Part shown: piece after piece, positions 5,570 through 64,000 of the stretch
Numbering within the stretch: the stretch's first letter is position 1
Layout of the letters: every line of letters begins with the position of its first letter
Assembly (NCBI RefSeq): GCF_000143415.4
Contig: NW_003314276.1
Coordinates: 2,293,072 to 2,357,071 of the forward strand
From: Selaginella moellendorffii
Taxonomy: Eukaryota; Plantae; Lycopodiophyta
Direction of reading: 5' to 3'
Length of the DNA stretch: 64,000 nt
The notes under the pieces: generated by a model
What the model saw: only the letters and a program-made list of their open reading frames with translations
What the model was told of the DNA's origin: nothing
Database searches by the model: none
Translations under genes and position numbers: made by a program

Positions 5570-5571
5570 TT

Positions 5572-5582
5572 TGGTATCAGAG
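5572..5582 (+). promoter_or_regulatory. Primer-binding site (tRNA-iMet)
   Basis: TGGTATCAGAG, 2 nt after the 5' LTR. Confidence 0.93.
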
Positions 5583-5739
5583 GAATTGTCTCAGTGATTC
5601 ATATCCAACTTTTGTTAGATTTTCTGACTCAAGTTGCATACGCAGAGACTTTTCTAGTAGATCCAAAGTGACCTGTGTAAGATTAGTTGGATTGCACCAT
5701 TCGGTAAGAACGTTGTATACATGTTCAGTTACTAATAGA

Positions 5740-14074: not shown

Positions 14075-14494
14075 ATGTTTTACAAAATGAAGCTAAATAT
14101 TTATCTTGCTATTTTATTTATACTCTTTATTAATTGTTTTTCAATAGAAATTTTTATTATAAATAGATTAGGCTATTCTATTGATGCATCATGTGAATCA
14201 AAAAATGATAAAATAATCCCAAGTATTCAGAATGATAGAAATAAATTTTCATTTAATTTTACAACATGTTGGGCTTTTTGTCGAACTCAATTTTGGTGTA
14301 AATTTGTAATTAATGATGGACCTCTTAAAGGAAATTTAAAGGAATTCTCTGTTTATGTTCAAGGAAGTAATAGTGATTATGAAGAAGCTGAATATATAGA
14401 ATATTATATATTTACCTATGCAATTTTTGAAACTCACAAACATTATAGATATGATTGGTCTTTACCGCAAAGGAGGTATAAACTTGATTTGTAA
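14075..14494 (+). CDS. S-protein homologue (SPH / Self-incomp_S1-like) small secreted protein
   Basis: Signal peptide followed by the SPH pattern IINRL...SCESKND...FSFNF...TQFWCKF. Intronless 139-aa ORF with a TATA-like tataaat at ~14030. Confidence 0.8.
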   Translation: MFYKMKLNIYLAILFILFINCFSIEIFIINRLGYSIDASCESKNDKIIPSIQNDRNKFSFNFTTCWAFCRTQFWCKFVINDGPLKGNLKEFSVYVQGSNSDYEEAEYIEYYIFTYAIFETHKHYRYDWSLPQRRYKLDL

Positions 14495-17101: not shown

Positions 17102-17311
17102 TTTGGATTGGAAATTGTTAGCGGAGAGAACCTGGTAACAAATTTATACAGGCCATCCACTGCTCCACCATGCTCTTGATTTGCAGCAAGCCACACCAAA
17201 AGACCGTCTACGTACTATGTAACAGCATGCAGTCATGCATTCCATCCGCTGTACCTATATTACCACTTGTTAGAGAAAAAACAAGGATTCTCAATGTAAC
17301 GACATGCCTGA

Positions 17312-19250: not shown

Positions 19251-19298
19251 GGCAAGAGCCACTCCAAGCCCTAGAAGAGCCCTAGAACAATGGAAAAA

Positions 19299-19314
19299 GC
19301 GCGGGAAATTCAAA
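19299..19314 (-). promoter_or_regulatory. E2F site with adjacent CHR-like element (TTTGAATTTCCCGCGC)
   Basis: Canonical TTTCCCGC E2F motif abutting TTTGAA, about 50 bp upstream of the NDC80 ATG. Confidence 0.65.
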
Positions 19315-24100: not shown

Positions 24101-24174
<74 letters not shown>

Positions 24175-24317
24175 CCCTGACTAAGTAGTACATTAATTAT
24201 AATACTAGAGCATATGAACTATTTATTTAGGGCTGAATCTTATCCATCCATTCTTGTATATAAGCATGGGTTTAAACCCTAATTAATATACTTATTTCTA
24301 TATCTAGAGCACTCACA
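21766..24317 (+). mobile_element. Small non-autonomous LTR element with short LTRs (TRIM/LARD-like)
   Basis: Direct repeats at ~21766-21951 and 24060-24317 both end ...cactcaca. PPT aaggggagaa lies at 24050-24059, and the flanks aatat/gatat resemble a TSD. No gag or pol recognised. Confidence 0.75.
24078..24172. repeat. (CA)n(TA)n compound microsatellite inside the 3' LTR
   Basis: Direct reading of the sequence. Confidence 0.97.
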
Positions 24318-24713
24318 GATATAATATTAAATAGATTATATTCAAGTATTATAATAATTGTTTTTATTTAATCTTTCCACTTAACAAAAGTTTACAATTG
24401 CTACAATAACTCAAATATGAATTTAAGCATCACCATATTTTATTTAAGATTATACAAGAATAATCAGAGATTTTTATATTTTAACTTTATGAGTTAAAAA
24501 GTAATTAATAAAAATATATTTTTCACAATCCATAATATAATAATTAAAGACAAAATCTTAGGAGAACACCTTATCAAGCATTTATTAATTATAATTTTTT
24601 CTTATAACCCTTGAAATTTGTAATAATAATGAAAATGTTTTAAGAATTATTTCACATCCTAAATTTTAAATACACTATATATTCTGACCAGTTTGAACTA
24701 CAAATTTTATTCT

Positions 24714-26540: not shown

Positions 26541-26653
26541 CTTGCAGCATTGTTCTAATGGAGCCCTCTTTCAAAAATTCATAAATCAAGCGCGGGAATT
26601 TCAAATTAATAGGGTTTACTTTTAGGGTTCTTCGCGAGGTCTTGGAAATGTGA
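26541..26653. promoter_or_regulatory. 113-bp spacer, probable bidirectional promoter with E2F/CHR-like motif and telo-box-like motifs
   Basis: Lies between head-to-head PPR ORFs. Contains gcgcgggaatttcaaa at 26590-26605 and tagggttt/tagggtt at ~26610-26629. Confidence 0.55.
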
Positions 26654-28435
26654 ATGAGAAGGAGATGTGCGCTCTGTGCAAGGTCGGGCTGCCAGGTTAG
26701 TGCCGCAGTGGGCTTCCGCTTTGCCCAGATTCAGGGGATTTCTGCCCCTTCCCAGCACCAGGACGCTCTCACGATCTATCTCAGTGCTTTGAGAGGCTGT
26801 GGCGGAGCCAGGGATTTGGATTCTGGAAGGATGATCCACGCTGATGCCGTGCAAGCCGGCGATGATTCCAACGTTTTCTTGGCGAACACTTTGATCAGCA
26901 TGTATGGGAAATGCGGGAGTATGGCCGATGCTTACAGGGTGTTCCAAGGCATGGATCGTCTAGACGTGGTTTCCTGGTCGGCTCTGGTATTGGGTTTTGC
27001 CGAGAATGGCGAGGAAGAACAAGCGCTGGATCTTTTCTCGCAAATGGAGGAGTGGACGCCCAACTCTCAGACTTTTGTAGCTGCTGTCAAGGCGTGCTCG
27101 AATCTGGCAGTCAAAGAATCCGGCAAGCTTGTCACCAGCAGGCCTGTGAAGATCGAGTCGCTGAAAAGAGGCATGGAAGTCCATTCGCGAGCCGCGAGAA
27201 GGGGCTACGTCCAAGACGATATCTTTGTAGCTGGAGCGCTGGTGGATTTCTACGCAAACTGTGGAAGCGTGCTGGATTCCAGGATGGTCTTGGATAGAAC
27301 ACGGTGTCACAACGCGGTGCTGTGGAATGCATTGGTTCTCGGGCTGGCGGAGAACGGGGAAGCCGAGCTAGCTCTGGAAGTTTTCTCGGCAATGCCGGGC
27401 TCTCTGGTGAACGCTCGAAGTTTTGTTGCTGCGCTCAAAGCCATGAGTTCCATAGCTGCGAAGCAAGTTGGCAAGGAAAAGATGGCGTGCCTAGAGAAGA
27501 GTCGGGAACTCCACGCTCGAGCAGCAAAGCTTGGCTACGAGTCGGATATTTTTCTCGCAAACACTCTGGTGGATTTGTATGCCAAGTGTGGGAGCACGAG
27601 TGATGCTCGGGATGTTTTCGACAGGATGACGAGCCGGAGTGTGGTTTCTTGGGGGGCACTGGTTCTGGGATACGTCGAGACTGGGAACGCGACGCTGGCT
27701 CTCAAAACGTTGTCACGCATGCAAGACGAGGGATTTACACCTTCGGCACTAGTTTTCGTGGCAGCGCTCAAGGCCTGCTGTGGAGTAACGTTGGAGCTCG
27801 GGAGAACGATCCATGGAAGCATTTGCAAAGGCGGGCTCGAGCAGGACTCGCTCGTCACCACCTCACTCATCGACTTATACAGCAAGTGTGGAAGCATGGA
27901 CGACGCTCAGCGAGTTTTTGACGGCATCGCGGAGAGAGACCTGGTTTGCTGGAACGCTCTCTCGACGGGATATAGCCGCCAGGGATTCACCACCCAGGTT
28001 TTCGAGCTCTTTTCTCAGATGCTGGAAGAAGGCTTGCAACCAAACTCCGTGACTTTCCTCGCTGTTCTTACGGCCTGCAACCATGGTGGGCTCGTCAGCA
28101 AAGGAAGGAGCTACTTTGACGCCATGTCGAGCTCCAGGTTTGGGATTACTCCCGGGATTGAGCATTACCACTCCGTGATCGATATTCTGGGCCGAGCAAA
28201 CCTGCTGGAAGAGGCAGTGGCGATGGTGACGTGCATGCCTCACAAGCCCAATGCAGTAACTTGGAGAACAGTGATGAGCGCGTGTCACAAGTGGAAGAAC
28301 GAGGCAGTGGCAAGGCTTGCGTTTGATGCCATCGTGGAGATGGACGAGAGCGACGCTGCAAGCTACATGCTGATGGCCAATTCGCTCTATGAAAATCGTG
28401 ACAAAGTTCCACTAGAACGGAGAACCGTGAGTTAG
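26654..28435 (+). CDS. PLS-class pentatricopeptide repeat protein (E-type, no DYW)
   Basis: P-L-S triplets (LISMYGKCGS, VVSWSALV, TFVAAVKAC), EHYHSVIDILGRA and SYMLMAN. The true start may be downstream. Confidence 0.94.
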   Translation: MRRRCALCARSGCQVSAAVGFRFAQIQGISAPSQHQDALTIYLSALRGCGGARDLDSGRMIHADAVQAGDDSNVFLANTLISMYGKCGSMADAYRVFQGMDRLDVVSWSALVLGFAENGEEEQALDLFSQMEEWTPNSQTFVAAVKACSNLAVKESGKLVTSRPVKIESLKRGMEVHSRAARRGYVQDDIFVAGALVDFYANCGSVLDSRMVLDRTRCHNAVLWNALVLGLAENGEAELALEVFSAMPGSLVNARSFVAALKAMSSIAAKQVGKEKMACLEKSRELHARAAKLGYESDIFLANTLVDLYAKCGSTSDARDVFDRMTSRSVVSWGALVLGYVETGNATLALKTLSRMQDEGFTPSALVFVAALKACCGVTLELGRTIHGSICKGGLEQDSLVTTSLIDLYSKCGSMDDAQRVFDGIAERDLVCWNALSTGYSRQGFTTQVFELFSQMLEEGLQPNSVTFLAVLTACNHGGLVSKGRSYFDAMSSSRFGITPGIEHYHSVIDILGRANLLEEAVAMVTCMPHKPNAVTWRTVMSACHKWKNEAVARLAFDAIVEMDESDAASYMLMANSLYENRDKVPLERRTVS

Positions 28436-29092
28436 CAGCTTACCGGGGATGGATCATTCATATCGATGATGGTTTCCAGGTAAGTTTTTCCTCGTTAGAG
28501 TTTGCATCTTGTTTGTGCTCACGCTTTTAAACATTCTTTAATGTTTTTCAGGCGATCATGAAAGACGTGTAGCAATTTCGCTGGTGCGCCGGACAGGATA
28601 TTTTGGAAAGACGCAGTCAACAAGCACAAAGACATGGTACGATAATGGTTTCAAATCGTCCTTTTTATCTGAGGTGCGCACTGCTCGATCAGGCATGGGT
28701 CCCGAATGGAAGATCTGGTGCTCATACACGCAGTCACAAAAATTGGCTCCAGCGGCGTGTGCTTAGAAATTCCGAGAAGGAGAGGGGCCCGTCCGGCAAG
28801 AAAATTCTTCTGGAAAGATCAAGGCATGGATTTTGGTGGGATTTTCGCTTTTCATCAGCAGCGGCCGTGGACTTGAAGGAAGATCTTCCACCAGCGGAAA
28901 AGAAGGAAAGGAGAAAAATCAACCAATCAATCATCCTGGTGGGTATTTAGCCGAGGAGGTGCGGTGATCGGTGCTCTAAGACAGCCGTAGTCTTGAGAAG
29001 CAAGTACACAGGACTGAGGAGGAGAGGACTCTCCTGTTTTATCTTCCGGAAGGAGAAGTAGCTCTTCTTCTTCCTCGTATGGACACAGGGAT

Positions 29093-29881
29093 ATGGGATC
29101 TCCGGTGATGGTTTCTTCGTGGCTGATTTTTCTGGTTCTAGCTGCTATTTATCACAGCCATGGTGAGTTCCAGCGCCTTGGAGGCGACGAGAAACCACAT
29201 GTCAAGTTTGATGGATCTCCGGTGGCTCCCGAGCTCGATGATTCTTCGTCCAAGAGATCAAATGCAACTAGTCTGGCTTCCAGGGGCAATGGTGGCGTCA
29301 ATGTGCTAGCAGCTATGCTCGTCACGGCTTCCTCGGTCATGGTTTTCATGGCGTTTCGTCTCTCGGTATGCCGCCACTGCACTGGCTCGTCGCCAAACTC
29401 GAACGATCAGCTGGACAACGCTTTTGAGACTTCGGTAGAGGATGGCCAGGAGGCTGTGGAGACAATGACGACAGATCTACGTGAAGGAAGTGATCGTCGT
29501 CTCAAGAAAGAAGATCTCGGTTTGGGTCTCGACTCGATCGAGAAGTTTACAGTGCTGATGGACTACCAAAAGTTGATGGCGGAGAGGAAGATGGGCAATG
29601 CGGACAAGTGTAGCGTCTGCTTGTGCGAGTTTAAAGCCATCACCGGCGAGGAGGTCCGACTTCTTCCTTGGTGCAACCATTTCTTCCATCCCGACTGCAT
29701 CGACCTTTGGCTCGTCTCGCACAAGTCGTGTCCGGTTTGTCGGGGGAGTGTGATCCCGCCTGGCAGCAGTTCCACTGGGACGATCCCTTCCAGGAACTTT
29801 GGAGTGGAACCGGAATCTCCGACGCTCGAAAATGGTGGTGGACAACACTTGGTGCTTCAAGTTGACAGAAATGTGGCTTGA
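29093..29881 (+). CDS. ATL-family RING-H2 E3 ubiquitin ligase
   Basis: Hydrophobic TM segment, GLD motif (GLDSIEKF) and RING-H2 CSVCLCEF...[17 protein letters not shown]...CPVCR. Intronless. Confidence 0.95.
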
Positions 29882-46749: not shown

Positions 46750-47940
46750 GGGAGAAGAAGTTCACAGCAAGAACTTCATGACATGGAACACTAAAGTCCA
46801 ATTCATTTTGATGGCTAAAGATTGCTAGGACTTAGTCAAGGGAATTGAAGAAGACTTCCTGGCACTAATGCCACTTTGTAGCTTATCTGGACTCCAAAAA
46901 CTTCAAAGCTGGTGACTGGACTAGGCTTTGGAGATGAATTCAAATGCCAAACTAGTTCTCACCCAAACTGGTTGCAACATATGTTTGCAATAGCTCAAGG
47001 AAGTGGGGGGCACAACAGTCTTACATGATTATGCAAAAGCTTTCTTTCTCTACTCTGTCTCCTTAGAGTTGTAACAATCATCTTCCATACTCTCATTCGT
47101 CCCATGCAAAACCATAAAGGAGCTCTACTCTAATATGCTCAAGGAAGAGCACTGAGTATAAAGCTAGCAATTCCCTTTAGGCTGCTCATAAGTAACCCTT
47201 GTTTCTTGGCAAAAAACTATCGAGTGGGGAGCAGAAGAAAGGAGGCAGGGCCTCATGGCTTTCTTATAGTTTTTTCTCCAAGAAGAAAAAAGGTCCTTAT
47301 TGTGTAAAGATGAGATATATAAAGCATGAATGTATGCAAAGAAGGCTACACCCAACACTTGCGTACACAGAGCAATTTATTGTTGATGATGGCTTTTCCC
47401 CCATCACTGGTGTTTGTTCTAGAGGTGTCATAACTAGATCACACGACTCCCTTGAGGTTTGTATTTCACATTTATAAACCTCTCCACATTCCACAATAGG
47501 TTTATGTTGGTGACAACATGGCATGGTGGTGGTTAGACTTTCAGATGGACCTCTTAAAGAAGTTCATCATGTTCACTTTGTTCCTAAAGCTAGATAAACT
47601 ATTCTTTCCATAGGTGCAGCATAGCATCAAGGCTTTACCACCACTTTCTTTGCAAAAGGGTGCACATCTTAAACTCTTTATTGTTTAAATAAGCATAAAA
47701 AACCATCAAGTTGTGGCATGCTTGTATGGGGCATGTCAATGAACAAGAGTTGCACACTTACTTTGTCAAGAATTATGGAGGATCAAGTTACAAGTTTGCT
47801 AGATCTGGTTCACAAAAACATGTGTTACCTACTTGTGGAAACATACATACTTTGTGTCTTTTATCAATGACCATTCCAAGTATGCTGTGGTGAGTCTCTC
47901 CACACAAAGAGTGAAGTTTTTGACCACTTTAAGCTTTCCA
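46750..47940 (+). mobile_element. Ty1/copia fragment (gag, pre-integrase, integrase)
   Basis: KNFMTWNTKVQFIL, LWHACMGHVN and YFVSFINDHSKY motifs. Confidence 0.75.
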
Positions 47941-48224
47941 AGTCTATTTTGTAAGTGTTATTTACAACCTTTTAACATCTGTATTGGTTTCTGGACCATT
48001 GAGAGGCAATGTCCTCTTTGATCCATGAACTCCATCCTTCTGTCACCTCATTGTTTAGCAGTTTCACATGACATTTGACTTTTTAACGTTGAGAAAGTCA
48101 GCGAGTCATCCGGAACTGACCGTGTTTATCCTTATAAGACGCGGTCAATCCCGCACTCAGCACATCAAAGTTCACACAAAAGCTTCTGCAAGTTTCTCTA
48201 GGCAAGTCTAAAAAAGTTCTAAAG

Positions 48225-48539
48225 ATGGCGAGGAACAAGATGCTGCTGGCGATGTTTGTGGTGCTCCTGGTGGGAGTTGACATTGGAGGAATTGCAAGCG
48301 CGAGCGCCCAGGGGCGATGCAAGCCAGGGTGGCACTGGGATGGGAAGACGTGCGTCTCTTGCCCACCCCGCTGGTACTGGTACAACAATTCTTGCCAGCG
48401 ATATCGATGCCCGCACAATTGGTACTGATACTTGGGTTCTTGCCACCGCTGCCCGACCAACTGGTATTGGTATGGGAACTCTTGCCACCACTGCCAGATG
48501 GGCTGGCGCTGGATTGGAAGTTTCTGCAAGAAGAATTGA
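48225..48539 (+). pseudogene. Secreted Cys/Trp repeat peptide paralogue B (5 units, in-frame TGA at 48426-48428)
   Basis: Signal peptide nearly identical to copy A. After the TGG>TGA stop the frame continues YLGSCHRCPTNWYWYGNSCHHCQMGWRWIGSFCKKN*. Confidence 0.88.
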
Positions 48540-49125
48540 AGTTGCCCATCAAGATCCAAGCTTATATAAGACTAGCACTTGCCCAGCATATGCTGCCCAA
48601 TTAGCAAAATACTTTTTTTTATATTAAAAAATAAATTGGAATAGTATAAAAAAAACAAATTGTGTTCCACTTTGAAAGAAGAATTTGATAATATAAATAT
48701 TTAGAACAAAATATATTCCTAGGCATAAGTAAGAAGAAATATCCATTAATAAAAATAATAGATAAAAATTATTATTTGGAAATATAAATATATTTATAAA
48801 AATACCCAACCCAGAAAAAGTAAAAATAAAATTTCTATTATTATAATATGTTATATGTAAATTATATTTTTAGTTGGGATAAACTTAAATTAAAATTTTA
48901 TCAAATAGAAGAGAATAATTACTAAGAATAATTATTACTCATTTTTATTAGCAAGACATTACTTAATTATAGTTTTTACTTAGAATATAAAACAATAAGT
49001 TTACATTAATATATTACTACCCAGATCTTGTCATGAAAATAATTACTAAAAAATACTTTGTAAATATATATGCTATAGAAACTGTAATTCCATAGTATTA
49101 TGTACTATTATTAGGTTTTGAATTT

Positions 49126-51310
49126 ATGTTACAGGTTTCAAGAACCCTAATGGGGCGAGCACTTCACTCGCAGAAAATGAAGAGAAAGATGCCAGCTCAT
49201 CCACCCCAGTGCCTCAGATACATCATATACCATATTCCTAGGCTTCCCAGCAACGACACAACCACCTGGCTCAAGGACCATGGATTCGAGCTCCTCCACA
49301 AGGCCTTTTCAACACACCCAGACCAAAAACTGGCAAGGAAATTGGCTGCCTCCTTCAACCCCAAGAACAGCACCATAACCGATGGCACCAACGAGATCAC
49401 CCTCAGCCCAGCAAGAATCGCCTTTGTTTTCAAAATCTCCAACAAGGGACTGCTCAAATTTTCAGGAGAAGTTCCACAGCAAATCATCAAGGCCAATCGA
49501 GAAATTACCAGTGAGCTCACATGGGAGGACATCCAGGAGCAGCATATGGATTGCCTCAAAGCCCTCCTCCTCTACTACGAACTTTGCCCAACAGACCGCA
49601 CCATCGGCAAGCGCACAGCAGAAGTCTACGGAGCTCTACTCGATGGCAAACGTGTGAACGTGGCTCATCATCTCCACAAGCTCCTTCTCAAGCTTCTCGA
49701 CTGTGCCATCCTCGCCACACTCAACCAGAAGACCATGCGGACAGTAATCTTCCCAATGCTGATTGCTCTACACCAAGCCCTTCCCAACAAGCAACCGTGG
49801 ACAACCCAAACAAACTCCACAGAACAAAGTGACAGCTCTGAAGAACACTTAGAATCAGAAGGAGCAACTCCCAGCAAAAAACTGAAGCCAGCATCTCAAC
49901 AATAAGGCTCAACTCACTCCAACAACACCAGCTCCAGCAACAAACACTCCAACAATTCAACTCCACTTCGCTGCCACCTCACACACAAAACACCAACGAA
50001 TCCAGCTCCAAAACCGCTGATCCAAGAGCACCTTGTCATCAGCGACAATGAAGACAACTCACACCACCATCCACACTCACCCCAGAGCCCACATCCACTC
50101 GAATCAGCCCCAAAACCGACAACTTCTCCTACATCGCCAAAGGAAAACGTCAGCTGCTCGCCCAGAACTCAGTTTCTCCACCAGCTGAGAACAACATTCT
50201 CACCGCCCCAACCTCCTTGACACGTTCCACAAAAGAAAACATTGACTACCTTCGCCAATCACTTGAAGAACACACAACCATGCCTCCTCCAGCAAATACC
50301 ACGACCAGCATTAACAAAAATTCCGCCCTTTCAACAAAATTCCAAGCGAAAAATTTCCCAACGGATAAATTAATTTCAGTGCCACATCTGGGCCGTTCAT
50401 CCACCATCAAACTGAAAAGCTCATGTCCAACCACCTCAAAGAATCCGGACCGACCACATCACCCACATCCAACAAAGCAGATTCAACCTCCAGCAACTTC
50501 AACTCCCGGGACCAAGAACACAGCGAACCCTAGCGGGAACCACCAGGATCACGGAGCAGGAGCAGGAGCAGCAGCCATGCCTCAGCCACAGAGTCAGGTA
50601 TGCCGTGATTACAATGAAATCAGGAAGGAGTACGAAGATAAACTCTGTGACCCAAGCTACTGCACCCGCAAGTTGTTTGAAGCCCTTGATCAACGCATGC
50701 ACCGCGAGCAAGCAAACCACCTCCCAACACCAGCCGATATCGCATAGCATCTTCTCAAGCAAGACTCCTTCATATACACCCGAAGAGCTATCAAGAAGGA
50801 GTTCTATGAGCCTTTAAACCACTGGCTGGATACTTAGCTCGAAGAGATGAAGCAGGTACGCACTGGGGACATTAGGAAGATTGTCTCCAAGAAGCCATCA
50901 ACCCCATCAGCAGCTCATGAATTCACCTACAAATTCAAATACGAATAGCTCAACACCTGCTACCGGAAGCTCGAGGATGATCATACCGCCCTCCTGGCTG
51001 AGGTAGCCGACCTCCAGGAAGATGGGACAGAGCCACCAGACGGTGTCCCCAACCACGAGCTTACACTCCCACAGCAAAAACGTCGCCTCTATCGACTGGA
51101 GCAGCAGCAACAACAAGCGATGGAGACAAACTATGTTCGCACTGAGGACGGTGTTTAGTTCTGTCAGGGGAGCAGAGTGTATCAACAAAAAACCTAAACT
51201 CAGGGGATTTTGACCTTGAACCCAAGGCTGCATTGGAGCCATAGATTAACTGCTAGCATATACTATATGCTGTGCATAATTTAGAACCGCTAACTTTTCA
51301 AAGGGGGGAA
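49126..51310 (+). mobile_element. Degenerate TE-associated ORF region (unassigned; retroelement accessory-ORF-like)
   Basis: A 259-aa ORF plus broken low-complexity and coiled-coil ORFs, with strong A/C strand skew and a PPT-like aaaggggggaa at ~51300. Confidence 0.4.
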
Positions 51311-51469
51311 TCCAAATTGTGGATCCCTATCTCCATTCTATCATTTTTCTTATCAATACTCAGCATTTTCTTACTCATGCTTCTTCTCAGCCCTTGGAGA
51401 TCGGGCCCTTTTTTCTTTTGTTTTCTTACTAATAGTAGATTTCCAGCGAAAAGGAGTTTTCACACCTCT

Positions 51470-52298
51470 TCAAGTGCTTGCTTGCTATGCCTGTGCTGGG
51501 GATACGAGGAGATCATAGGATTCCAGATATCCTCCTTCACATGACGATATATTTGCGAAGAACACATCAACGCAAGCGAAGCACTCTTGAGCTTCTGACC
51601 AAAGGTCCACACTTGGAGTACATGGTGCCAAGCAAGCACTCAACACGTGGTGCTGTCGATCGCCTGGATGGATCTGGGGAGCACCGAGATCTCGATGCTC
51701 GTTCCGAGCATATGCTGCGATCATGATGCTCCACGAGAAGAGATTCCTCTCCGGGGTCATGTCGAAGATGGATCTGGCCTCATCGAGGCGGAGGAGAGGG
51801 GCATAACCGGATGGAATTGCGCAGCTCTCCTGGCTGGAAATTCGCTCAATTGATCTCTCCAGATCTAGTTGATGGAATATAGCTTCATTTGCAATTTATT
51901 TTGGCTTTTGTTTCACACTAGATGATGTTTTCTTTGTTATTGACTTGGCTCGGGCTGAACAATCTTTGCATGAGAAGAGGATAGCTTACATGCTACCTGG
52001 AGTTTCACAGCTTGTAAATGGAAGAAGCGTGAAGGGCAGCATATACACCTGGAAAAGAGAAAGAAACATAGAGAGTTAGATCAATGGAGAATGTCATCAA
52101 GCGCACTTTGAGCCACACATTGAGCTCTACATTGACATTTAGCTGCTTTTCCAAGCCCCAAGTTAAATGGTTTATCATCGAAGCTGCAAAATCCCACACA
52201 TAAAGACAAACTTTCCTTCAGTACATAGGAGATAGTAGCTACGCACACAAACCTGAGAAATACTGGTTTTGCTTCTCAACAAGCTCCGAGCCCTCAAG
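51470..52298 (-). pseudogene. Inverted duplicate of ~30965-31860 (DUF1997 3' exons plus PPR fragment)
   Basis: ASMINHLTWGLEKQLNVNVELNV and PERNLFSWSIMIAAYARN on the minus strand. Confidence 0.85.
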
Positions 52299-52399
52299 AC
52301 GATAAAAAAAACCTGGCTCTGGCTTCCTTGGTGCTGCATGAACCTACATACATTTATTTGTTACCAAGAAAATGAGAAAATAAATCTAAAATCTTAGAA

Positions 52400-52730
52400 C
52401 ATACTCACCAAAGGTGAATCTCCCACCATTTGTAGAACGAGACTCCAATGTAGCAGGATGTCTTTTTAGTGTATTTCTGCACAAGATCATAAAGGCAGTA
52501 AACCTTTAGAATGAGTGTGATGGTCTTTTGGCTCCTGGGATCTAGTTTCTGCCAAGTTGCATTTGAAATGTGAGCATACACTGTACAGATGAAGACCCTC
52601 AAGTGCCCCAACCGAGGGTGCTTCCCAGGCAGGTCAGTTTTTATTAGAGTACAATTGAGTTGCTCTGCCAGACCGTTCTACTGGGGAGTATAGGATGTTG
52701 TAATGATGCAATTGACTTGAATTACCTCAA
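52400..52730 (-). mobile_element. Ty1/copia integrase/SH3 fragment
   Basis: TSYTPQ*NGLAE and HLRVFICTVYAHI...KLDPRSQK. Confidence 0.75.
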
Positions 52731-53031
52731 ACAATGGCTGGCCTTGTCCAGAGATGAATCTCTCTTGTAGTAATGCCTTCTGTTGCGATCATAGAGGGCA
52801 TCTTGGCTGGAAGCAATATGCACGTGGAATCCTTCCCGAGCACACAATCTACGCCACTTCCCCTTTTTTAACCTTTCATAGCACTTTCAAAACAAAGTTT
52901 TTATGATTTAAGCCTTACTTCGTGTCACCTGAGGAGCCTCTCTCACCCCATTTCTTCTCCCAATAAGTTTGCGATTTTATTTAAATCAGATTTAAAATCA
53001 TAGGACAATTCATTTTGTGCCTCCAATTTTG

Positions 53032-53205
53032 TTAGTTCTTGATGCAGTGGCCCTTGCTCCATTTCCAGCCAAACTGGCATTGGTGGCACTTCTTGTTGTA
53101 CCAGTACCAGTTGCCTGGGCAACTCACGCATTTGCTTCCACTCCACTTCCATCCGGAGAGGCATTGGTGGCAATCGCTGCTATACCAGTACCAGCCTTTG
53201 GGACA
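53032..53205 (-). pseudogene. Cys/Trp repeat peptide paralogue C (4 divergent units, no signal peptide)
   Basis: CPKGWYWYSSDCHQ CLSGWKWSGSKCVS CPGNWYWYNKKCHQ CQFGWKWSKGHCIKN*. Open frame, but the N-terminus is unrelated sequence. Confidence 0.75.
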
Positions 53206-53718
53206 CTGGATGGAGGATTTGAGGCTGAGTCTAACACTGCTATGTACACGATTTTTACTGCTTCTCGGGCACGATATGTCGTGTTTGTGCTTCATTGACG
53301 GTCAATAAACAAGTGTACGACTTTATCCAAATGAACAACCTCGAGTTTCGATGTGAAATTATCAAAAATATCCATAAAAATGTCTATCTATCTAATTGCG
53401 ACCAATCACTATTTTATATGAATATAAATTGAGTTGCTAACTGGCTCATATGCATTCAAAAATATGGTAATGTTTTTAAAAGTGAACGCACTTATTGAGT
53501 GACACGTATGTGGTGGAGAAAAGGCCTCAAGCTTCTAAACATTCCGAAAAAATTTATGAAATATTAGAAAATGAAACTCAAGCAGCAAGGCAGGATGAAA
53601 TCTCTTCTGATTTTGTTGTGAGGAAATTGGACTTAGAATGGGACGACACAGTTTATTTACCAAAAGGTTATTACAATTGGCTATTATACAAGTTTCAGCA
53701 TGGATCTTGATGGACAAT

Positions 53719-54021
53719 TCAGCCCTTATAGAACCTTCCAGTCCAGCGCCAGCCCCTTTTCGCATCTGTGGCAACCGATGCCATACCAGTACCAACAGAG
53801 CAGCGGTGGCAAGAACATGGTATTCCAGAACCAGTACTCCGGGCATCGGTGGCAGGAATTGTTGTACCCCAGTGCCACCCCGACTTGCATNNNNNNNNNN
53901 NNNNNNNNNNNNNNNNNNNNNNNNNNNNNNNNNNNNNNNNNNNNNNNNNNNNNNNNNNNNNNNNNNNNNNNNNNNNNNNNNNNNNNNNNNACCGCCTCAC
54001 GCTCTTCTTGTTGCTCGCCAG
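53719..54021 (-). pseudogene. Cys/Trp repeat peptide paralogue D (frameshifted, ATG>CTG, spans N gap)
   Basis: CKSGWHW, YNNSCHRCP, WYWYG and GWRWTGRF occur in shifting frames. ctggcgagcaacaag corresponds to atggcgagcaacaag of copy A. Confidence 0.75.
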
Positions 54022-54569
54022 TTTCTTAAAACTCTCCTCTTGCCTCTGTCTCGACTTGCAAACGATAAGAAACTTTGAGAAACTCGAAGCTTGAAGTGTT
54101 GGATGGGAGGATTTACAGTTCTAGGCGGTGACCACGTCTTACAGTGACCACGTTTAGTTCAGGGCTACTCATTGACAATATCTACGTTAAAAAGTAAAAT
54201 GTGAAGCTGTGATACAATGCGGCCTTGGCTTGGACTGGGTACTGATTGATCCAGATTTGGTCCTCGCGTTTGAGACAACACAATCCTGTGGGGAAGGATG
54301 GAAACCAAGTGAACTAGAAAATTCACGTAAACGTTTCTTGAAGTTTACCTCAAACAATGTCTAAAAGATGCCATAGACACTTCTCTGGTAGCTTCTCTTG
54401 TACTGAAGCCTTCCTTTGTGTTCGGAGTATCTTGGTTGTAAGTAAAAATCAGTCGTAGAATGCAGCTAATTATTCACGCAGGATAAGTTAAATAAATGTT
54501 AAAAAGAAAGAAAGCAGGGCAGTCTGAGGCCAGGAGTTCGAGCCTCACATCTTTCATATACTTTCATAA

Positions 54570-54700
54570 CGAAGCACCACGTCGCGCCCCGAGGGAATGC
54601 ACTCGTCAAAGATGGCCACAGAGAGATCCGTTATCCCGGCGCGCGTATAGGCTCCCATCATAACTGTCCAGGAGATCGTGTTCGGCTGGGGCATAGCGCG
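54570..54700 (-). pseudogene. Single PPR-motif fragment
   Basis: AMPQPNTISWTVMMGAYTRAG...AIFDEC. Confidence 0.65.
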
Positions 54701-55272
54701 GAGCGAAGTAAGACAGCTATGCACACGGTTTTTACTGCGTCTCCGGCACGACAAGTCGTATTTGTGCTTGCTTGACGGGGTCAATCCAAATGAAACAGTC
54801 TCTATTTAAGTCCCGTGAAATCATCAAAAGATAATGGATCTTTGTTTTACCTGAGTTGCTAATGCATTAAAAAATAGGATAACATTTTTACGAACCGTAA
54901 TTTCTTGTTGGGTATTTAAAGTCCACTCAGAAGCAAGAACTAAGAAAAAGTAAACTAAACTAAACTGGCTAAACTAAGAAGCATGGGACTTTAATTCACA
55001 TTTCTCTCTCATCTCTTGTCTACTCAGAGTATGAAACTCAGCAGCGGAAGACTTTGGTATTTCGATAATCTTGCTACTCGAGTTGCTAGAAACTAAAAGT
55101 GAAACTGGCAGCAAGTCTCTCATCAAGCGGATTCTGGATGAGGAAACCGAGCCTTAGAATGGGAAAGAAAAACACACACATTTTATTCACCAAAAGGTTA
55201 TCACAAGAAACAACACAACCACAACATTTATTGTCGTTGACATATTACATGAGCTAATCTTGATAGGCAGCT

Positions 55273-55668
55273 TCAGTTCTTCTTGCAGAAACTTCCGGTC
55301 CAGCGCCAGCCCATCTGGCAGTGGTGGCAAGAGTTGCCATACCAGTACCAGTTGATCGGGCAACGGTGGCAAGAGTTGCCATACCAGTACCAGTTGATCG
55401 GGCAGCGGTGGCAAGAACCCGAGTACCAGTACCAGTTAATCGGGCAGCGGTGGCAAGAACCCGAGTACCAGTACCAGTTGTGCGGGCATTGGTGGCAAGA
55501 ATTGTTGTACCAGTACCAGCTTGGCAGGCAAGAGACGCACTTCTTCCCATCCCAGTGCCACCCCGGCTTGCATCGTCCCTGGGCGCTCGCACTTGCAATT
55601 CCTCCAATGTCAACTCCCACCAGGAGCACCACCACAAGCATCGCCAGCAGCATCTTGTTGCTCGCCAT
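55273..55668 (-). CDS. Intact secreted Cys/Trp/Tyr-rich tandem-repeat peptide (131 aa; 7 C-x10-C units), paralogue A
   Basis: ATG at 55668, hydrophobic signal peptide ending ASA, 42-bp tandem units and TGA at 55273. TATAAA on the minus strand at 55793-55798. Three local paralogues. Confidence 0.88.
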   Translation of the reverse strand: MASNKMLLAMLVVVLLVGVDIGGIASASAQGRCKPGWHWDGKKCVSCLPSWYWYNNSCHQCPHNWYWYSGSCHRCPINWYWYSGSCHRCPINWYWYGNSCHRCPINWYWYGNSCHHCQMGWRWTGSFCKKN

Positions 55669-56379
55669 CTTTTTTAAGAACGCCTCTTGCTTTGATGTGA
55701 TCCCAGACTTGTGAACGAGATCGGAGAAAGCTAGAGAAACTTGGAGGAGCTTGAGTGTGAGCTTTGATGTGCTTGAGTATGGGGTGGGAGGATTTATAGC
55801 GCAGGAGAGCGTGTTATAGTTCCGGATGACTCGCTGACTTTTTCGAAGTTGAAAAGTAAAATGTGAAGCCGTGCAGATACGGATGTAGACCTTCGACCGT
55901 GTCAGGCGCAAAGTCAGACGTTTTGGGTATTTGTGCTTTCATTGTAGTAAAAAACATTAATGTTTTACAACGTCTGGAGTAAAATGGGTTTGCCAAAACA
56001 TAATTCTTGCAAATGCTACGCTTGAGAATCTTTTAGATTCATGACTAATGGGGAATGTTATTGAATGAATTTCTTCCGCTTTTAATAAGCTCAGCTCCCA
56101 GACTGCATTTTACCTGGATTTGCCTGTGCACATAGACAAGGAACTCCATATAAGACAAGCCTTGTCTTCGATCATGAAGGAGTGGAACATCATCTCTATA
56201 ACAAAACTGAATGAGCAAGAGTGCCTTGAAAAAGAAAAAATGAGAGTGTTTGATCACCTAAAGGACCTCCTTGTTTCAGCAAATGCAACCTAGAATAGCA
56301 ACCATCTGCATTAGAAAGACTGATTTGACACGAGGTCTCCCACAGTCATTTTTTAGGAATTTTAGCCCATGAAAATAAA

Positions 56380-58499
56380 ATTAGAGATGAAATTAATTAA
56401 TATATCATGGTTGGATTACCAAATCCTCGTGACGAGCTTGAACTCTTTGAAATAGTTACATTGCTTATTATCATGTTGTTGAGTTGCTAAATGGATTTCA
56501 ATAGTGGCACAGTCATAGCCTTTTGTAAACATATTGAAATAGATATTTAATACTTTTTATAGTTGCACATATTTTAATATTTATATGAGCCTTATATTTT
56601 TTATAGAGGTACTTGTTATAAAGTACAACCCAATGGTTATCCATATGACAACCATTTTTAAAAATTGTATGTCCATTGTTTGGTCTATAATAATCTAGAT
56701 ATCCATTAACAAAAAATGTTGTTTCATTATTAAAATTTTTTAGAAAACCTTTTGAGCAAGAACCATTTTCCATGCAAGGACTATTAAGATAAAAAAGTCC
56801 ATATGGTCCATACATTATATCTTAAATTAAGATGAAATTTCAAGTTTTTTAAATACCTGTTATGTTTTTGCTCCAAAAGTTATATAGAAACTTTTTCAAT
56901 TTAAAATGCATGGCCATTCAACACTTATAATTCTTCTTCCTATTCATCTAGAAAATTTCCAAAATGTTTATTTCATTGAAGGTAATGAGTTAATTGAACT
57001 TCAAAGAGTTAAAATGGTACCATATTTACAAAATGGTTTGAATTAAATAAACATGATCCAAATGCAAGACAATATACATATCCTAAAATTCCTCTACATT
57101 ATACATTTAATAAACACACTTATCATTGACATCAATGAAATATTATCTCGCAAATGTATTCTTTTCCTTATTTAATACTGAACTTTATTATTTATGCTTT
57201 ATACTGCTTTATAGAAGAGGGGCTACTTCCTTTAATGATCTAAAATAGTTTATAATACTTATTTTGAAATATATTGCTATGAGATTTTTTGCAGATGATA
57301 TAGAATGAGAAAAATGTTTAGAAAATGCTTCCTCTTTCAAAATGCCACCACAATTAAGATAACTATTTATTTTTTATATGTCTTTTTTAGTCCAAAAAAT
57401 CCTTATTTTTTATGGGAAAAATTCAAAAACTCTTTCTCTTAAAGTTTTGTACTAACAGATCCATTATCTTGTTATGAACATGCTTTACATTATATAAATA
57501 ACAAATTCAATCTATATGGAAAATCTAATCAAGATTATAAATTGCCTTCATCTTATATAAGTTTTGATATAAATAATCATATTAATTTAACACAATTCAT
57601 TCATTCTGTAAAAAGCAATTTACTTTAATTTAATAATGAGAAAAAGATTATATATTATGATATCCTTAGCACGATTAACAACCCAACTGAACAAAATTGA
57701 TATATTTTCATTGATGGTCTTAGTGGTACTAATAAAACTTTTCTCCTTAACACTCTTATACATATGTTTCAACTTCTAAACAAAAATGTAATTAGTATGG
57801 CTTGGATAGGTATTGCAAGCATTTTACTACATAATGGTTTATGCTAAAAAATTAAGAATTCACATGTGTTAATATAAGATGAAATTAGCATGGTTTACAT
57901 ACATGCATTTTCTGCCATTAATTTAAATTTACAAGATATAAAAAAAATCAATTACCTTTTGGAGGAATTGTTATTATTACAAGTGGTGACTTTAGACAAA
58001 CACTACCAGTTATTCCACATGGTCACTGAGCACAAATTATTTCAAATTCAATAAAAATGAATAGGTTATAGAAATTTTTTAGAACACTTCCACTAAAAAA
58101 GAATATGAGACTACTTAAAAACAACTCTTTATGGGCTGATTGGCTTCTTCAAATTGGAAATGGTAATAGTTATGTGAATTTACTAAATTTACCTTTAGAA
58201 TCTATTATATTGCCTTACATATAAGTAATAATATCCTTTGTTGTTGATTTTGTTTTCCCATCTCTATAAAATATTTCAAACCCCAACATTGCATCTGATA
58301 GAGTCATACTTATCCCACTTTATAATGATGATACTTTTCCTATTAATAATGCTATAGTCTCTTCCTTACTTGGTGACATACATATTTATGAAAGTGTTGA
58401 CTTTTTTGATACTAAACACCTAGAAGATATTCCAATTGAATTCTTGAATTCCAGTACTCTTTTTAGTCTTCCACCACATAAACTCTTGCTTAAAGAAGG
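56380..58499. mobile_element. Degenerate Helitron Rep/Pif1-helicase relic
   Basis: Minus strand: SPCMENGSCSK...DNHWVV...AHINIKIC...KYLFQYVYK (Rep). Plus strand: FIDGLSGTNKTF, GDFRQTLPV, LKKNMR, WLLQIGNG and LPPHKLLLKEG (helicase). Confidence 0.88.
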
Positions 58500-59630
58500 T
58501 GTTAGAATAGACTAAGTACCTAAAGCACTAAGTTGCATAAAGTGCTTAGATCTTGGAAAGAAAAGTGATTAGATTCTACTTTATCAAGATAAACATAAAC
58601 CTAGTTCACTACTCTCTCCACCCATCTCTACATCACCTAAAACTTGTTGCTACTGCGAATAAACATCATCTGGTGATGACTTGTAATTGTAATCTACATG
58701 GTCTTAAGACCCCATATTAGAATTGCTAGTTGTTACTGCCATCGGAGAGAAAGATCCTGAATGAAGCAATTGATTAACTTTGGGTTAATCACAACTGTTG
58801 GCCCAAAGGCCTGCTTAATTTTTGCCATGTCATTGGGCACATGCAAAACTCACAATAGCTTTTTCGGAGTCTGGCGCTATTTTGGCATACCGGTGGCCTA
58901 ACGTGAGGACATGGGTACTCCACCAGCTAGCATGGAATGGAACTTGGGCTTAGACCCAAGCCAGACGCAGAACAAGGACAGGCACGCAAGTGGGAGCTAG
59001 ACTATGCCTCAGGTTGGTCGGCCATGCCCGACCTACCCACTATCCCTACTACACATTTGGAACCCCCCCGCCCGTTGAGGAACACACGCTTTGGGCTTTC
59101 ACCCCAAGCCTCCCTTAGTATCAAGAGTTAATCTCTGCGACAAGCTCGAAACTTACTAAATATGGAATGTCCCTAGATTGCAAATTTGGACACGAGACGA
59201 ACACCATTATGTTCAAGACAATCTCTACATTCCGTAAATATGCCAAATGAGAAAATCTAGACACTTTCCATAAATAGTATTTGGGACGAATTGAGACTAA
59301 CACAAAGGGCATGATAGCGAGGGTGTTTGGCAGACACGGTAAACTATCATCTAGCGAATATTGAGGGACCAAGCTCAATATTGCAGGGGTTCCCAACATT
59401 AGCAAGTGCAAGTCAACAACATGAGTTTCTCATCACCGTGTCAAGTCTGCTTGACAAATGACAACTTAGGATTTCCTTCCTTAGTGCCCTTCCGGTCTAA
59501 GTGCACATGTGATGACCAGTTTCTCAACTAGCTCAGGCAGAGATTGATAACGAGTCCAGCAATACCGACCTCCTGCCGTTGTGGCAGTAAGGAAAGATAA
59601 CTTTCGATACCCAAAGTCACATTCACGACA
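58500..59630 (-). repeat. 3' LTR of a second LTR element related to the chromovirus
   Basis: The minus strand starts TGTCGTGAATGTGACTTTGGG after PPT agagggggagag (59631-59642) and is homologous to the 10868 LTR down to ~58865. The probable end at 58500 coincides with truncation of the Helitron frame. Confidence 0.8.
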
Positions 59631-62600
59631 CTCTCCCCCTCTAGGGAAGATCGACGTCCTCGTCAATGCATACTCGAGTCTAGAATACCGCCAAGGAAAC
59701 AACTCCAGAAAAAGTTCACAGTACTCACACTATGTGAGAAATGCACCAACTTAAATGAGTTAAGGGGCAACCTCTTTGTCTAACGCGGATGTGCTACCAA
59801 CTCAGACACCTTCCGGCTATCGCCGACAAAAAAATGACCAACACAGTTAGCCACCCTTGCTACTCTGGGAGTCACCCAGCTTACAAAAGTGTAATATGCC
59901 TCTGCCTACAGGAACATAGAGAGAGAAGATAAAGGCCCCAACCCTCATGAGCAAAGAAACCAAACCCGTCAGTAAGGTTTAGATAGACTACTGTAAATAG
60001 GCAGTTAGAGTTGTTTACACGGTCACGCCCTTTCAATGAAAAAGGAACATCGATAAAGAGGCAGGTTATGTGACCAATCGACAGTAGCTACCCCATGACT
60101 AGAGATTTCAGTATGCACATGAAGTGCCGAAGCCAGTCTGCGTATATTGGCCCAAACTCAAAGATCAATAGATGGACAATATCAAAGTCATAGACAATGA
60201 TATCTTAGAGACTTATTTATCAGTGAATATATCTTAGATTAGAACACAAAAGTATTCCAAGTAAGTTATCATCCGATAAACCACCAAGATCACAATCATT
60301 GGAAAACATAGGATTCACTATCCAGCAAAATTCAATAGCAAGTATACCATCAAGTACACTCAATGAGAAAACTTAACTACCGAAGATTGTAGATAGTATG
60401 CTAAACAACTTACCAAAGATAACTCAAATAACACAAAGTATCCTTAACCGACAAGCACAATACTCGCGAATGTATCACCCGAAGGAAATAACATCCTAAT
60501 TTATCAGAACTAACTTGAGGAACAATCAACAAAACAGAATAAATGTGGTAAGACCAACAAACACTTAGTCATGCTAACCATCGCATAAGTTAATCTGAAT
60601 AAATCCCGGTCAATAATACTAAGGAACTAGAGTTGCTTAAGTAAGTGTCAACAACGTCCTATCGATATCTTAAACCCAAGAGACTAATCCAGAGCAAACC
60701 ACAAAGAACATGTGGTATTGTGAAAAGCCATAAGCCATCAAAGAGAACAACTAACCATCATGAAAGATCATCAATCATCCCATCAATAGAGAAATGCATA
60801 ATCGTCATCGAAGAAAGAATCCACCATCCCGAAAAATGGCAAATCATTCTAGATCAATAATAATCAAGCAAAACCTTTGACAAGGATAATCAACTATCCT
60901 AGATGATAGTCAATCATCACCAATGACTGCAAGATGCAAAAACTAACTTCAACATCGAAACTAACAAGCCAAAATGCCTTCCCCAACAACTTTTAACAAA
61001 TGGAACAATGAGCACAAACTCAAGGAACCAAAGCTCGAAGAAGCCTATAGCCAAGTTTTGCCAAATAATGATCACAAGTCTCATAGAAGCTAACGTCAAT
61101 GCGAAAGAAGAAATCGTGATGCAACTCACAATATCTTCCTCAACACATCCATAAGCCAAACTTCATAATGCCAAAGCTAATGAAGAGTATGTCTGCATCA
61201 ATCCAAAAGCTAAGCATAACGAAGCTATGCTCAACAAGTGATCATTAAATGATCCTCCATGAATCCATCTACAGCAAGACATAATTCACTTCATAACAAA
61301 CCTAAAAAAAAAAATCATTAATGATCGTTATATCCCGAACTCAAATCCAGCAAGGACTCAACATTCTAATATCGATCACTAACTCTTCCTCTCGTAGAGT
61401 TAGCATAGTCCACGACTAAATCACTTTTCAAGAAAAAGCTAAAGCTCAACCCTCTACTAAATAATCTCGTCTAGAACACAACTAATTCAACTTGCCACTT
61501 AGTTCGTTTGAACATCAACACAATTGCTAACTAGCAAATGCACGAATGCCAACAACACAAAGCTATAGCCAAATCATCAACACTATATTTATCAAGACTA
61601 ATGAAACTCAATATCAATCCTTGGAAGGATATCTCAGTTCACTCAGATCTCAATATCAATAATGTCAATGACAAGGCATCACTTCAATGCCATCAACACC
61701 AAAACAAAGCTAGAAGAAAGCATGAGTGAATCACCACTCAAAACTCTTCAACAACCAAGCTAACCAAAGTCGAAGATACTTTAGTCAGTATCCAAGACCA
61801 ATCCTCCAACAAAACTCAGTTACAGATAACACTTCATCAAGGAGTGATTCACCACGTCCAAGACTCAATGAAATCCAACACTACGGACTAAATGTAACCA
61901 AATGATATCGACAAAGGTAGAGTCGACATGTCAATATGAAAAGCTCATGTAAGTCTAATGACACGATCCTCCACAACACCATCCGGTAAAGCAAGCCCAT
62001 CACTGCTAAATCATCATCAACCAAAGCAAGTGTCAACGGTCCTTGATGAAGTCTACAAGTAATCACTAGTCNNNNNNNNNNNNNNNNNNNNNNNNNNNNN
62101 NNNNNNNNNNNNNNNNNNNNNNNNNNNNNNNNNNNNNNNNNNNNNNNNNNNNNNNNNNNNNNNNNNNNNNNNNNNNNNNNNNNNNNNNNNNNNNNNNNNN
62201 NNNNNNNNNNNNNNNNACTCGAATCCAACTCAACCGCAATAAGCTCACTAATGCATTTAGTCAATAGCTCTGAGCATGCCTTGAAGAGGCTAGCTATGTG
62301 ATCAACACTCAGTCGAAACTAAAGTGAAAACCATGAGATGGATTTATATCGGTACACAACCTCCTCATAAACAAAGCTATAGTATAGGTACCAACATCTT
62401 AACCTTAAACAACCAAGTTGGACATCACCATCCTTAGCCAAGGCACAGGGCCACCAAGACTAAGTCAAGATCAGTGAGAGCTCATTACTCTCGTAGAGTC
62501 TAACGAAATGCAAGGTGCAACCTACCACCAAGCAAAACGCTATAAGAAAGGCATAAGGATCACCTTTCTTAGAAAAGTGCAATGGCCACTTTTCTATACC

Positions 62601-64000
62601 AACTCCAGACTTTATCCAACTCAATTGCCTTAGCCCCAAAAATTAGCATCCCTTTCGGGCTACATCATACAAACTATATACTAAGGTTTAAGCCGACCGA
62701 AGTCAACTTCAACCCCTTTACTAGTTTGTACTGGCTTTCGAAAACGGAATGGTTTTTGGGCAAAATGATCAATAAATCAGCCATTGGAAAAGTCTAAGAA
62801 AATTTGTGGAAAATTTTCCATCCTAGAGAAAGAATGACTCTCAGTTCAGGAATGCAAACTTTCAAGACTCAACCAACTTCCTCTTACAAACAATTTCACA
62901 TAGGTTCACCTCAACACAAATTCTCATGACCCATAATATGCTTAAGCATCGAACACCTTTGCCCATTTTTCTGATATTCAACACTGACATTTGCAAAGTG
63001 CTAAATGAACATCTAAAGCTTGATCATGAAGACCACATCTTCAGACATTCACATTGCACTAACACTCTTCTTCAATCACCTTCAAGATCCAATGTGAAGC
63101 CAAAACACTAATAAGAAAAATGGCACGGAAAATCAAGGTCTAAGGAAAATTCCTCATCACTCGAATCAACAATGCCACTTCCACTAACACAAGTGCTAGC
63201 AATGTCAATGCCTCAACTACACACCTTCTCCATCCAACAATCTACTCCAAGTGCTAACGGATCAACTGATAAGTTATAGCAAATGAATGCTACAACCCTT
63301 TTTCTAACACATTATGGGCAAACCATCAAGAATAAGGAACCAACTTAAGCTTAGCATAATGGACCACCATTGAGATTCCAATCAAGGCTATTACAATGCT
63401 ACTATATGCAAGTAGACTAACTTCACCATCAACCACCTTGGGGTTGATCATCATTTAACCAAACAACTTCATAAACGCATTACTTATTATCACATGGATA
63501 TGATATAAGCATTACAATGACTTGATCATCAATTGAGCAACACCACGAGCAATGCCTATATCATTACTTCAAAAGTTTATGTGAGTATCAAGTGTCAACT
63601 CGATTTGACAAAATGCAACATAAATGCCACACTCCACCAATAGAGATTTACAACACCGAACACCACTAACTTTTGTTCACAACACGGTCAAGCTCATGCC
63701 ATTCTCTTTCCGACCAAACTCAAAACTAATCCAATACCAAGCTACTCAAGGGGCAATAGCAAAGTTCCCCGGAAAAGAATTAAGCATTGCAATCCAAGTC
63801 TTCCAATAGCAAGCCTAGACAAAATGGTATAACACTTCACCGCTATCCATCCCATAACTCACCACTTGTAAAACCATCATTTCCAATATGCATTAAGGTA
63901 GGGACTCTTGATTGCATGATGTGAACACGAGCAATGAGTTAACACCTCGTTGCAAATCATCCCTCCAAGAAAAGAAGATGATTTACATGTTTGATCCTTC
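58500..64000 (-). mobile_element. LTR retroelement 3' portion running off the window; internal region unrecognised
   Basis: 59631-60150 matches the 3' UTR of the first element (10445-10867). Further upstream I recognised no integrase or chromodomain. Confidence 0.6.

Follow-up and report, generated by a model that had tools for sequence, protein, structure and literature searches.

A secreted Cys/Trp tandem-repeat protein family in Selaginella moellendorffii and its possible role in binding extracellular surfaces

The stretch of Selaginella moellendorffii DNA analyzed here (64,000 nucleotides; hereafter, the window) carries near its end a short ORF whose product a sequence-only reading had proposed to be an undescribed multi-unit peptide system, functioning either as a chain of disulfide-closed aromatic beta-hairpins, as a precursor cut into several hairpin peptides, or as a burpitide-like precursor cross-linked in trans. 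This raises the questions of whether the gene is functional, to what kind of protein it belongs, and which of these fates is the most probable for its product. The gene is intact, comprises an uninterrupted ORF of 131 amino acids in a single exon (ATG at 55668, stop codon at 55275-55273), and is absent from the existing annotation. Its features are as follows:

55273..55668, minus strand: single-exon ORF, 131 amino acids (translation; coding sequence conserved relative to the sister copy)
55582..55668, minus strand: signal-peptide-like leader, 29 amino acids (hydropathy; kept in paralogues)
55531..55572, minus strand: unit 1, type A (C-x2-G-W-basic/polar-W)
55321..55530, minus strand: units 2-6, type B (WYWY strand, His following the second Cys)
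55279..55320, minus strand: unit 7, type A, then terminal Asn and stop
55793..55798, minus strand: TATA box, 130 nt upstream of the ATG and 25 nt upstream of position 55773

The residue counts previously given for this protein were reproduced exactly by retranslation: a 29-residue leader ending in ASA precedes a mature region of 102 amino acids, which starts with Gln30 and contains 14 Cys, 14 Trp, 10 Tyr, and a single Asp as the sole acidic residue. The hydropathy profile of the leader has its hydrophobic core maximum near residues 6-19. The putative cut at A29|Q30 is proposed on the conservation of this A-Q pair across the five intact members of the family, and cleavage at an earlier site is possible. 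The mature part (12.6 kDa) is cationic, with a computed net charge of about +9 at pH 7 and +15 at pH 5.5, and 25% of its residues are aromatic. It is built from seven 14-residue units of the formula C-x3-W-x-W-x4-C-x2, with Cys spacings alternating strictly as 10,2,10,2,...,10, and with six C-x2-C pairs and eight His in the chain. In a six-frame count, the motif C-x3-W-x-W-x4-C occurred once in positions 1-47000 and 15 times in 47001-64000, which argues against a chance occurrence. Two unit types were distinguished, type A featuring Gly4 and a basic or polar residue between the two Trp, and type B featuring WYWY and His13. The first and last units, already noticed as distinct, are both of type A, the unit order being A-B5-A in the focal gene and A-B-A-B-A in the five-unit genes.

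Units 3 and 4 differ at only 3 of 42 nucleotides, and units 5 and 6 at only 2 of 42, pointing to recent intragenic duplications. Across the family, unit counts of 3, 5, 6, and 7 were found; whole units are gained or lost, and the Cys number is always even. Since a single Cys also remains at each end of the chain, one disulfide per unit, formed within the unit, appears to be the most plausible pairing. The unit junctions bear directly on the proposal that the protein is a multi-core precursor cleaved at the unit boundaries to release cationic hairpins singly or in pairs. Among 22 junctions, the dipeptides HR (8), VS (5), HQ (4), HH (2), IQ (2), and IR (1) were counted, so that an Arg stands just before the next unit in 9 of them, as would suit such cleavage. 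However, there is no spacer, the junction dipeptide is not conserved, and a C-x2-C junction between two disulfides would be poorly accessible to a protease. The Ib-AMP multi-core precursor, by comparison, has acidic propeptide spacers of 16-35 residues. Likewise, the suggested cut after Asn finds little basis, the internal Asn residues lying within the loop and being not conserved. The pattern of cyclotides and AEP processing was not recovered either: the terminal Asn has no residues after it, and the C-terminus of one intact member is different. Processing into separate units is accordingly considered improbable.

To place the gene in its genomic context, the window was compared with a locus on GL377581.1 (L005), which was found by following XP_024531936.1, the only Selaginella match of the exhaustive homologue search. 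The window contains three further family copies, all of them broken and translated with X or piece by piece, and a block shared with L005:

48225..48542, plus strand: inverted paralogue, 5 units, with an in-frame TGA at 48426-48428 and a 6-nt insertion between units 2 and 3
53720..54030, minus strand: decayed paralogue, start codon gone, frameshifts, 100-N gap at 53891-53990
53032..53212, minus strand: 5'-truncated paralogue retaining 4 of 5 units; a deletion has removed the promoter core, the signal, and unit 1
52709..56321, no strand assigned: duplicated block colinear with L005:4438-8604, including a pectinesterase remnant at 54215-54466

At 53212, where the truncated paralogue breaks off, reads from the RNA of intact sisters continue into unit 1. 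Together, 52709-56321 and 48031-48571 of the window align colinearly with L005 4438-9123 apart from deletions and one inversion; the intact counterpart of the pectinesterase remnant resides in L005. The L005 array comprises at least nine copies of the gene family, of which four are intact. Its direct sister of the focal gene (5094-5447) has six units; one 42-nt unit and two bases separate the two genes. The window cluster appears to be a duplicate of part of this array. The alternative that L005 represents the other haplotype is disfavored because its block diverges from the window by 2-4.7%, compared with 1.3-1.6% for the allelic scaffold GL377680.1, and because its neighbors are different.

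Several further observations were made at the two loci. In L005:178-16237, family copies are interleaved with pectinesterase remnants, and the repeated segment seems to consist of the peptide gene and part of a pectinesterase gene. One intact copy (16237-15938, minus strand) has a leader that is shorter by 8 residues and an atypical last unit. The called gene L005:977-4671 (Sec23 helical) begins inside a peptide-gene fragment. In the window, an insertion of about 4 kb at 48600-52700, possibly a transposon, separates the inverted paralogue from the remainder of the cluster; this insert contains ORFs at 49126-49905 and 50217-50747 without Pfam matches and a PPR fragment near 51.5-52.3 kb. Outside the cluster, an S-protein homologue was identified at 14075-14494 on the plus strand (PF05938, E 3.8e-7), the exact sequence of which is absent from the protein collection. 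The interval 5560-10352 (plus strand) is occupied by a decayed Ty3/gypsy retrotransposon in which gag, protease, RT, integrase, and chromodomain-like pieces are recognizable, and ordinary genes are located at 16079-29881, namely a GDSL lipase, Ndc80, a head-to-head PPR pair, and a RING-H2 ATL-type gene.

Conservation of the focal gene was evaluated against its sister copies. In comparison with the direct sister, 2 differences in 354 coding positions contrast with 56 in 1202 flanking positions (Fisher p 8e-5), and the conservation of the coding region holds even assuming that one copy is neutral (Poisson p 0.011). Recent gene conversion could account for this low coding divergence instead. Relative to the 5-unit subfamily, dN/dS amounted to 0.28 for the leader and 0.32 for the units, and 8 synonymous versus 7 non-synonymous changes were counted between two 5-unit genes (p 0.003). 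The family is under purifying selection, with a dN/dS of about 0.2-0.3. At the level of the unit, the 27 units from the five intact genes show no change at C1, W5, W7, and C12 (pN 0 versus pS 0.30), whereas the remaining ten positions vary freely (pN 0.53). Purifying selection on Cys and Trp codons, which had been set as a check on function, was thereby found; since C1 and C12 belonged to the unit definition by which the 27 units were collected and W5 and W7 did not, the invariance of the two Trp is the independent part of this test. Counting against the invariance of W5, the expressed 3-unit sister has this residue replaced in its terminal units.

Transcription of the family was followed by mapping two 2026 RNA-seq runs, which may originate from other accessions. 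All first mates over the focal gene mapped to the plus strand, with leader depths of 385 and 38 in the two runs, indicating RNA from the minus strand; plus-strand ORFs over the focal gene were rejected on the basis of this strandedness. The depth over the middle units was only 2-5, a jump of exactly 168 nt (four units) occurs in 73 and 8 reads, and at 55576 the base of the sister was present in 312 of 316 and 39 of 39 reads, respectively, so the reads come mainly from a 3-unit sister. Contigs of run X1, presumed to represent RNA, matched the 6-unit sister at the unit junction and at four diagnostic bases; such contigs cannot show absence. The family is thus clearly transcribed on the correct strand, the diagnostic reads representing the 3- and 6-unit sisters and not the 7-unit copy. 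Position 55773 is the likely transcription start, as many RNA molecules of the subfamily, with reads largely from a sister copy, end there. Upstream of the TATA box, the focal gene, its sister, and the inverted paralogue have in common a promoter word with two TGAC cores 4 bases apart on the opposite strand (55832-55842 and 48095-48107), and W-box cores are present in the promoters of other paralogues. A separate transcript overlaps 55925-56100, just upstream of the focal promoter, being represented by a 2.6-kb contig in X1 and by stranded reads in X22 and X23. In run X11, which is labeled as a different organism, near-identical and exact pieces of the focal gene were found at 55294-55702, pointing to a close relative or a mislabeled sample.

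Family expression was estimated at about 280 reads per kb per million in X23, and the depth of the subfamily differed tenfold between the two RNA samples. Lineage-specific secreted CRP families often signal, and expression that differs between samples would suit a secreted signaling ligand or a reproductive recognition peptide acting on a receptor kinase. The free variation in unit number and the very high level of transcripts are difficult to match with a receptor ligand, however, and a signaling role appears to be an outside chance, on a par with unit-wise processing.

Structure prediction was carried out in two AlphaFold runs, both of which yielded seven two-stranded beta-hairpins, in which a W-x-W-x strand is paired to an x-C-H-x strand (pLDDT 75 and 79, pTM 0.42 and 0.47); the alignment behind model 2 included hand-picked non-plant repeats. 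Model 2 aligned over its full length with the Cys-rich rod of Chlamydomonas MST1 (TMq 0.57-0.67, with a suggestive E of 7e-3; VIA Z 4.8, rmsd 4.8, 102 residues aligned), while model 1 reached a TMq of about 0.3 against rods of this type. The other top fold matches of model 2 were the Cys-rich domains of ELAPOR1, class C GPCR, Eph, and TNFR. These matches are consistent with one another and suggestive, none being significant alone (E > 1e-3, Z < 5, pTM 0.47). At the level of sequence, Pfam PF23091 matched the repeat in 5 stretches with an E of 1.4e-5, its 25.4 bits lying below the cut-off of 33.2, and PF07699 likewise remained below its cut-off (10.2 versus 23.1 bits). The focal protein did not match DUF5874 (PF19202) at E ≤ 1; 3 of 20 alignment members did, with a best E of 0.055, and an Atlas feature score of 0.82 for this domain is a lead only. 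Regarding chitin binding, no Pfam match to CBM14 or hevein was obtained, VIA returned CBM14 with a Z of 2.2 for model 1 only, and the Atlas hints are weak (0.79-0.82). Taken together, the predictions lend support to the architecture proposed as the first option, a chain of disulfide-closed aromatic hairpins, with the full-length MST1 alignment staying below significance.

The best sequence and fold matches are accordingly the Cys-rich repeats of the TNFR and growth-factor-receptor type (TNFR A1; MST1, PDB 8TX1, 8WA2, 9B4H; ELAPOR1, PF23091; Ephrin_rec_like, PF07699). In common with these, the focal protein is predicted to form an extracellular rod of small one-disulfide beta-hairpins, and a C-P-x-G-aromatic start is shared. 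In contrast to them, it is a stand-alone protein and not part of a large receptor or filament protein, and it features a strict 14-residue period, no B modules, a W-x-W(Y) strand, and scores under the Pfam cut-offs. Homology and convergence both stand as readings of this likeness. A hairpin with the same 10-residue loop, C-P-x2-W-x6-C, is also found at the N-terminus of long-form C-type lectins such as NKG2D and Dectin-1 (E 0.11, not significant), where it is closed by a disulfide; it represents a single hairpin of a globular domain, compared with seven in the focal protein.

The pairing of the Cys is also relevant to the alternative that the chain binds metal, its six C-x2-C pairs and eight His coordinating Zn or Cu with no disulfides. 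The C-x2-C pairs, the His adjacent to Cys, and weak zinc-ribbon Pfam matches for some alignment members would agree with it. Against this stand the signal peptide, which directs the protein into an oxidizing route, the unpaired Cys kept at each end, which intra-unit disulfides need and zinc ribbons do not, and the fold matches to disulfide-rich extracellular domains, making a metal-binding chain very improbable.

An even smaller probability is assigned to the third of the original options, a split burpitide (RiPP) precursor whose Trp and Tyr are cross-linked by a BURP cyclase in trans, although Selaginella kraussiana makes burpitides (PMC11253845). Split burpitide pathways use a repeated recognition sequence in which a hydrophobic residue is flanked by charged ones (PMC12186524). 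No such sequence precedes the units, the mature region has one acidic residue, and the aromatic residues are situated inside hairpins whose invariant Cys pairs indicate disulfide folding. No BURP gene was detected in the Pfam-scanned segments of the window or among the called genes of the 22-kb L005 locus, a nearby BURP gene being common and not obligatory. The earlier statement that the window lacks BURP, P450, and protease genes was borne out in the ORF list and in those 44 longer stop-to-stop segments from 33.7-63 kb that were scanned with Pfam, the one exception being a gypsy aspartyl protease at 6533-7291, which is unrelated.

Searches for relatives returned few candidates. No homologues of 72-229 amino acids, and none with the N-terminal 61 amino acids, were found in the protein searches, the scope of which excludes unannotated plant genomes and transcriptomes. 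Exact look-up of the focal protein and two sisters in a collection of 15 billion proteins and a metagenome scan were both blank, and no description of the family was found in the literature searched. The focal protein is about 40% identical to P0007, and the same 14-residue period occurs in P0007, P0017, P0019, and P0008, which are unnamed bacterial or protist-like proteins; P0009, P0028, and P0052 were rejected as low-complexity false matches. P0007 (bacterial, 728 aa, 12 Tyr/His-rich C-x10-C-x2 units; L003:3108-7187) is encoded directly after two pilin-like genes (weak N_methyl match) and is possibly a type IV pilus-associated adhesin. P0051 from Dimargaris cristalligena (L001:5001-5366) is a small, secretion-type protein of 121 aa with five 13-residue C-x9-C-x2 aromatic units. 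These arrays share an aromatic strand with the focal protein, but they are Tyr/His-rich instead of Trp-rich, mostly lie within large uncharacterized proteins, and, in P0051, have a loop of 9 residues; they are probably convergent with the spikemoss family. Given the 14-residue arrays in bacterial and protist-like proteins and the 13-residue version in Dimargaris, the scaffold is widespread and was probably invented more than once.

Compared with known plant CRPs (defensins, thionins, heveins, snakins, alpha-hairpinins, Ib-AMPs, potentides, and jasmintides), the focal protein similarly has a signal peptide, is small, cationic, and disulfide-rich, possibly carries an N-terminal pyroglutamate, and belongs to clustered birth-and-death genes; none of these CRPs has (C-x10-C-x2)n. 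Pfam returned no match to any named plant CRP family, and none of the Cys patterns published in a 2024 review equals 10,2,10,..., including those of defensins, thionins, heveins, knottins, snakins, alpha-hairpinins, Ib-AMPs, potentides, jasmintides, lybatides, and beta-ginkgotides (PMC11253845). The lack of a match to named plant families, as noted before, therefore persists. As for the proposed novelty, the family is undescribed in plants, but its unit resembles the widespread TNFR/growth-factor-receptor-type repeat, which lowers the claim from a new system to an undescribed family of plant peptides built on a scaffold of known type, and it is classed here accordingly. The best explanation of its history is a Selaginella-specific family of secreted proteins made from a 14-residue module and undergoing fast birth and death.

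Two uses of an uncut rod have to be weighed, of which a structural part in the plant's own wall or surface, binding hydroxyproline-rich glycoproteins, pectin, or cellulose, or self-assembling, is regarded as rather unlikely. The best fold match, MST1, has a Cys-rich domain of the growth-factor-receptor family that forms a disulfide-rich rod, arranged in antiparallel dimers beside a glycosylated poly-hydroxyproline helix (PMC11015965). The high family expression and the purifying, not diversifying, selection agree with such a role, as does the position of the L005 array adjoining pectinesterase and GH9 genes. A common fold does not imply function, however, and high gene turnover would suit defense better than a wall scaffold. 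Furthermore, RefSeq XP_024531936.1 ('putative pectinesterase 11', L005:10001-12026) joins the leader and unit 1 of an intact 5-unit gene to a pectinesterase; the model exits the peptide gene at a GT within unit 2, and the downstream pectinesterase possesses an in-frame ATG and a signal peptide of its own. A natural peptide-enzyme fusion was rejected on these grounds, and the protein is most likely a gene-model chimera, so the pectinesterase neighborhood may be chance.

The other use, and our main reading, to which a probability of roughly one half is given, is that the protein is secreted and stays uncut, and that this cationic rod attaches to a repetitive surface outside the cell by aromatic stacking and charge, with the unit number setting avidity, most likely in defense. 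Clustered copies with many pseudogenes are the pattern of plant defense CRPs, and this was counted in its favor, as were the tenfold depth difference between samples and the cationic, aromatic-rich composition. The recurrence of the same spacing and aromatic strands in the protein beside pilin-like genes and, one residue shorter, in the Dimargaris protein was counted for the rod as such. The missing excess of amino-acid change between the close five-unit paralogues counts against the defense reading. Mechanistically, each unit would fold as a beta-hairpin from the WYWY strand, a two-residue turn, and the x-C-H-x strand, its two Cys presumably joined in a single disulfide, as they are in modules of the TNFR A1 type and in the long-form C-type lectin hairpin. 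The hairpins would align into a rod that is not cleaved into units, and alternating residues would place W5 and W7 on the disulfide face and Tyr, Tyr, and His on the opposite face. By stacking and charge, this rod may bind repetitive or anionic surfaces, fungal or oomycete wall glycans or membranes in the first place and the plant's own wall polymers in the second, in what would most likely be apoplastic defense.

More tentatively, this large and highly transcribed lycophyte family may represent a new class of plant protein for defense or wall binding, namely a modular rod of Trp/Tyr hairpins that attaches to microbial glycans or membranes, with intragenic duplication tuning both its length and its mix of A and B units. 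If true, it would be the first stand-alone TNFR-like Cys-rich module serving plants as an effector peptide, and would provide a natural scaffold of a new kind. The short units can be synthesized and the short genes expressed, making activity and ligand directly testable, and the natural 3-, 5-, 6-, and 7-unit variants provide a ready avidity series. The focal copy has the longest unit count observed and keeps a clear record of the gain and loss of units and whole genes. Plant CRPs have been cataloged almost wholly from seed plants, and the Cys pattern of this spikemoss family is absent from the current catalog. The genome of a model lycophyte, annotated twice, thus conceals an abundant class of secreted CRPs, the genes of which are skipped by annotation or spliced onto their neighbors.
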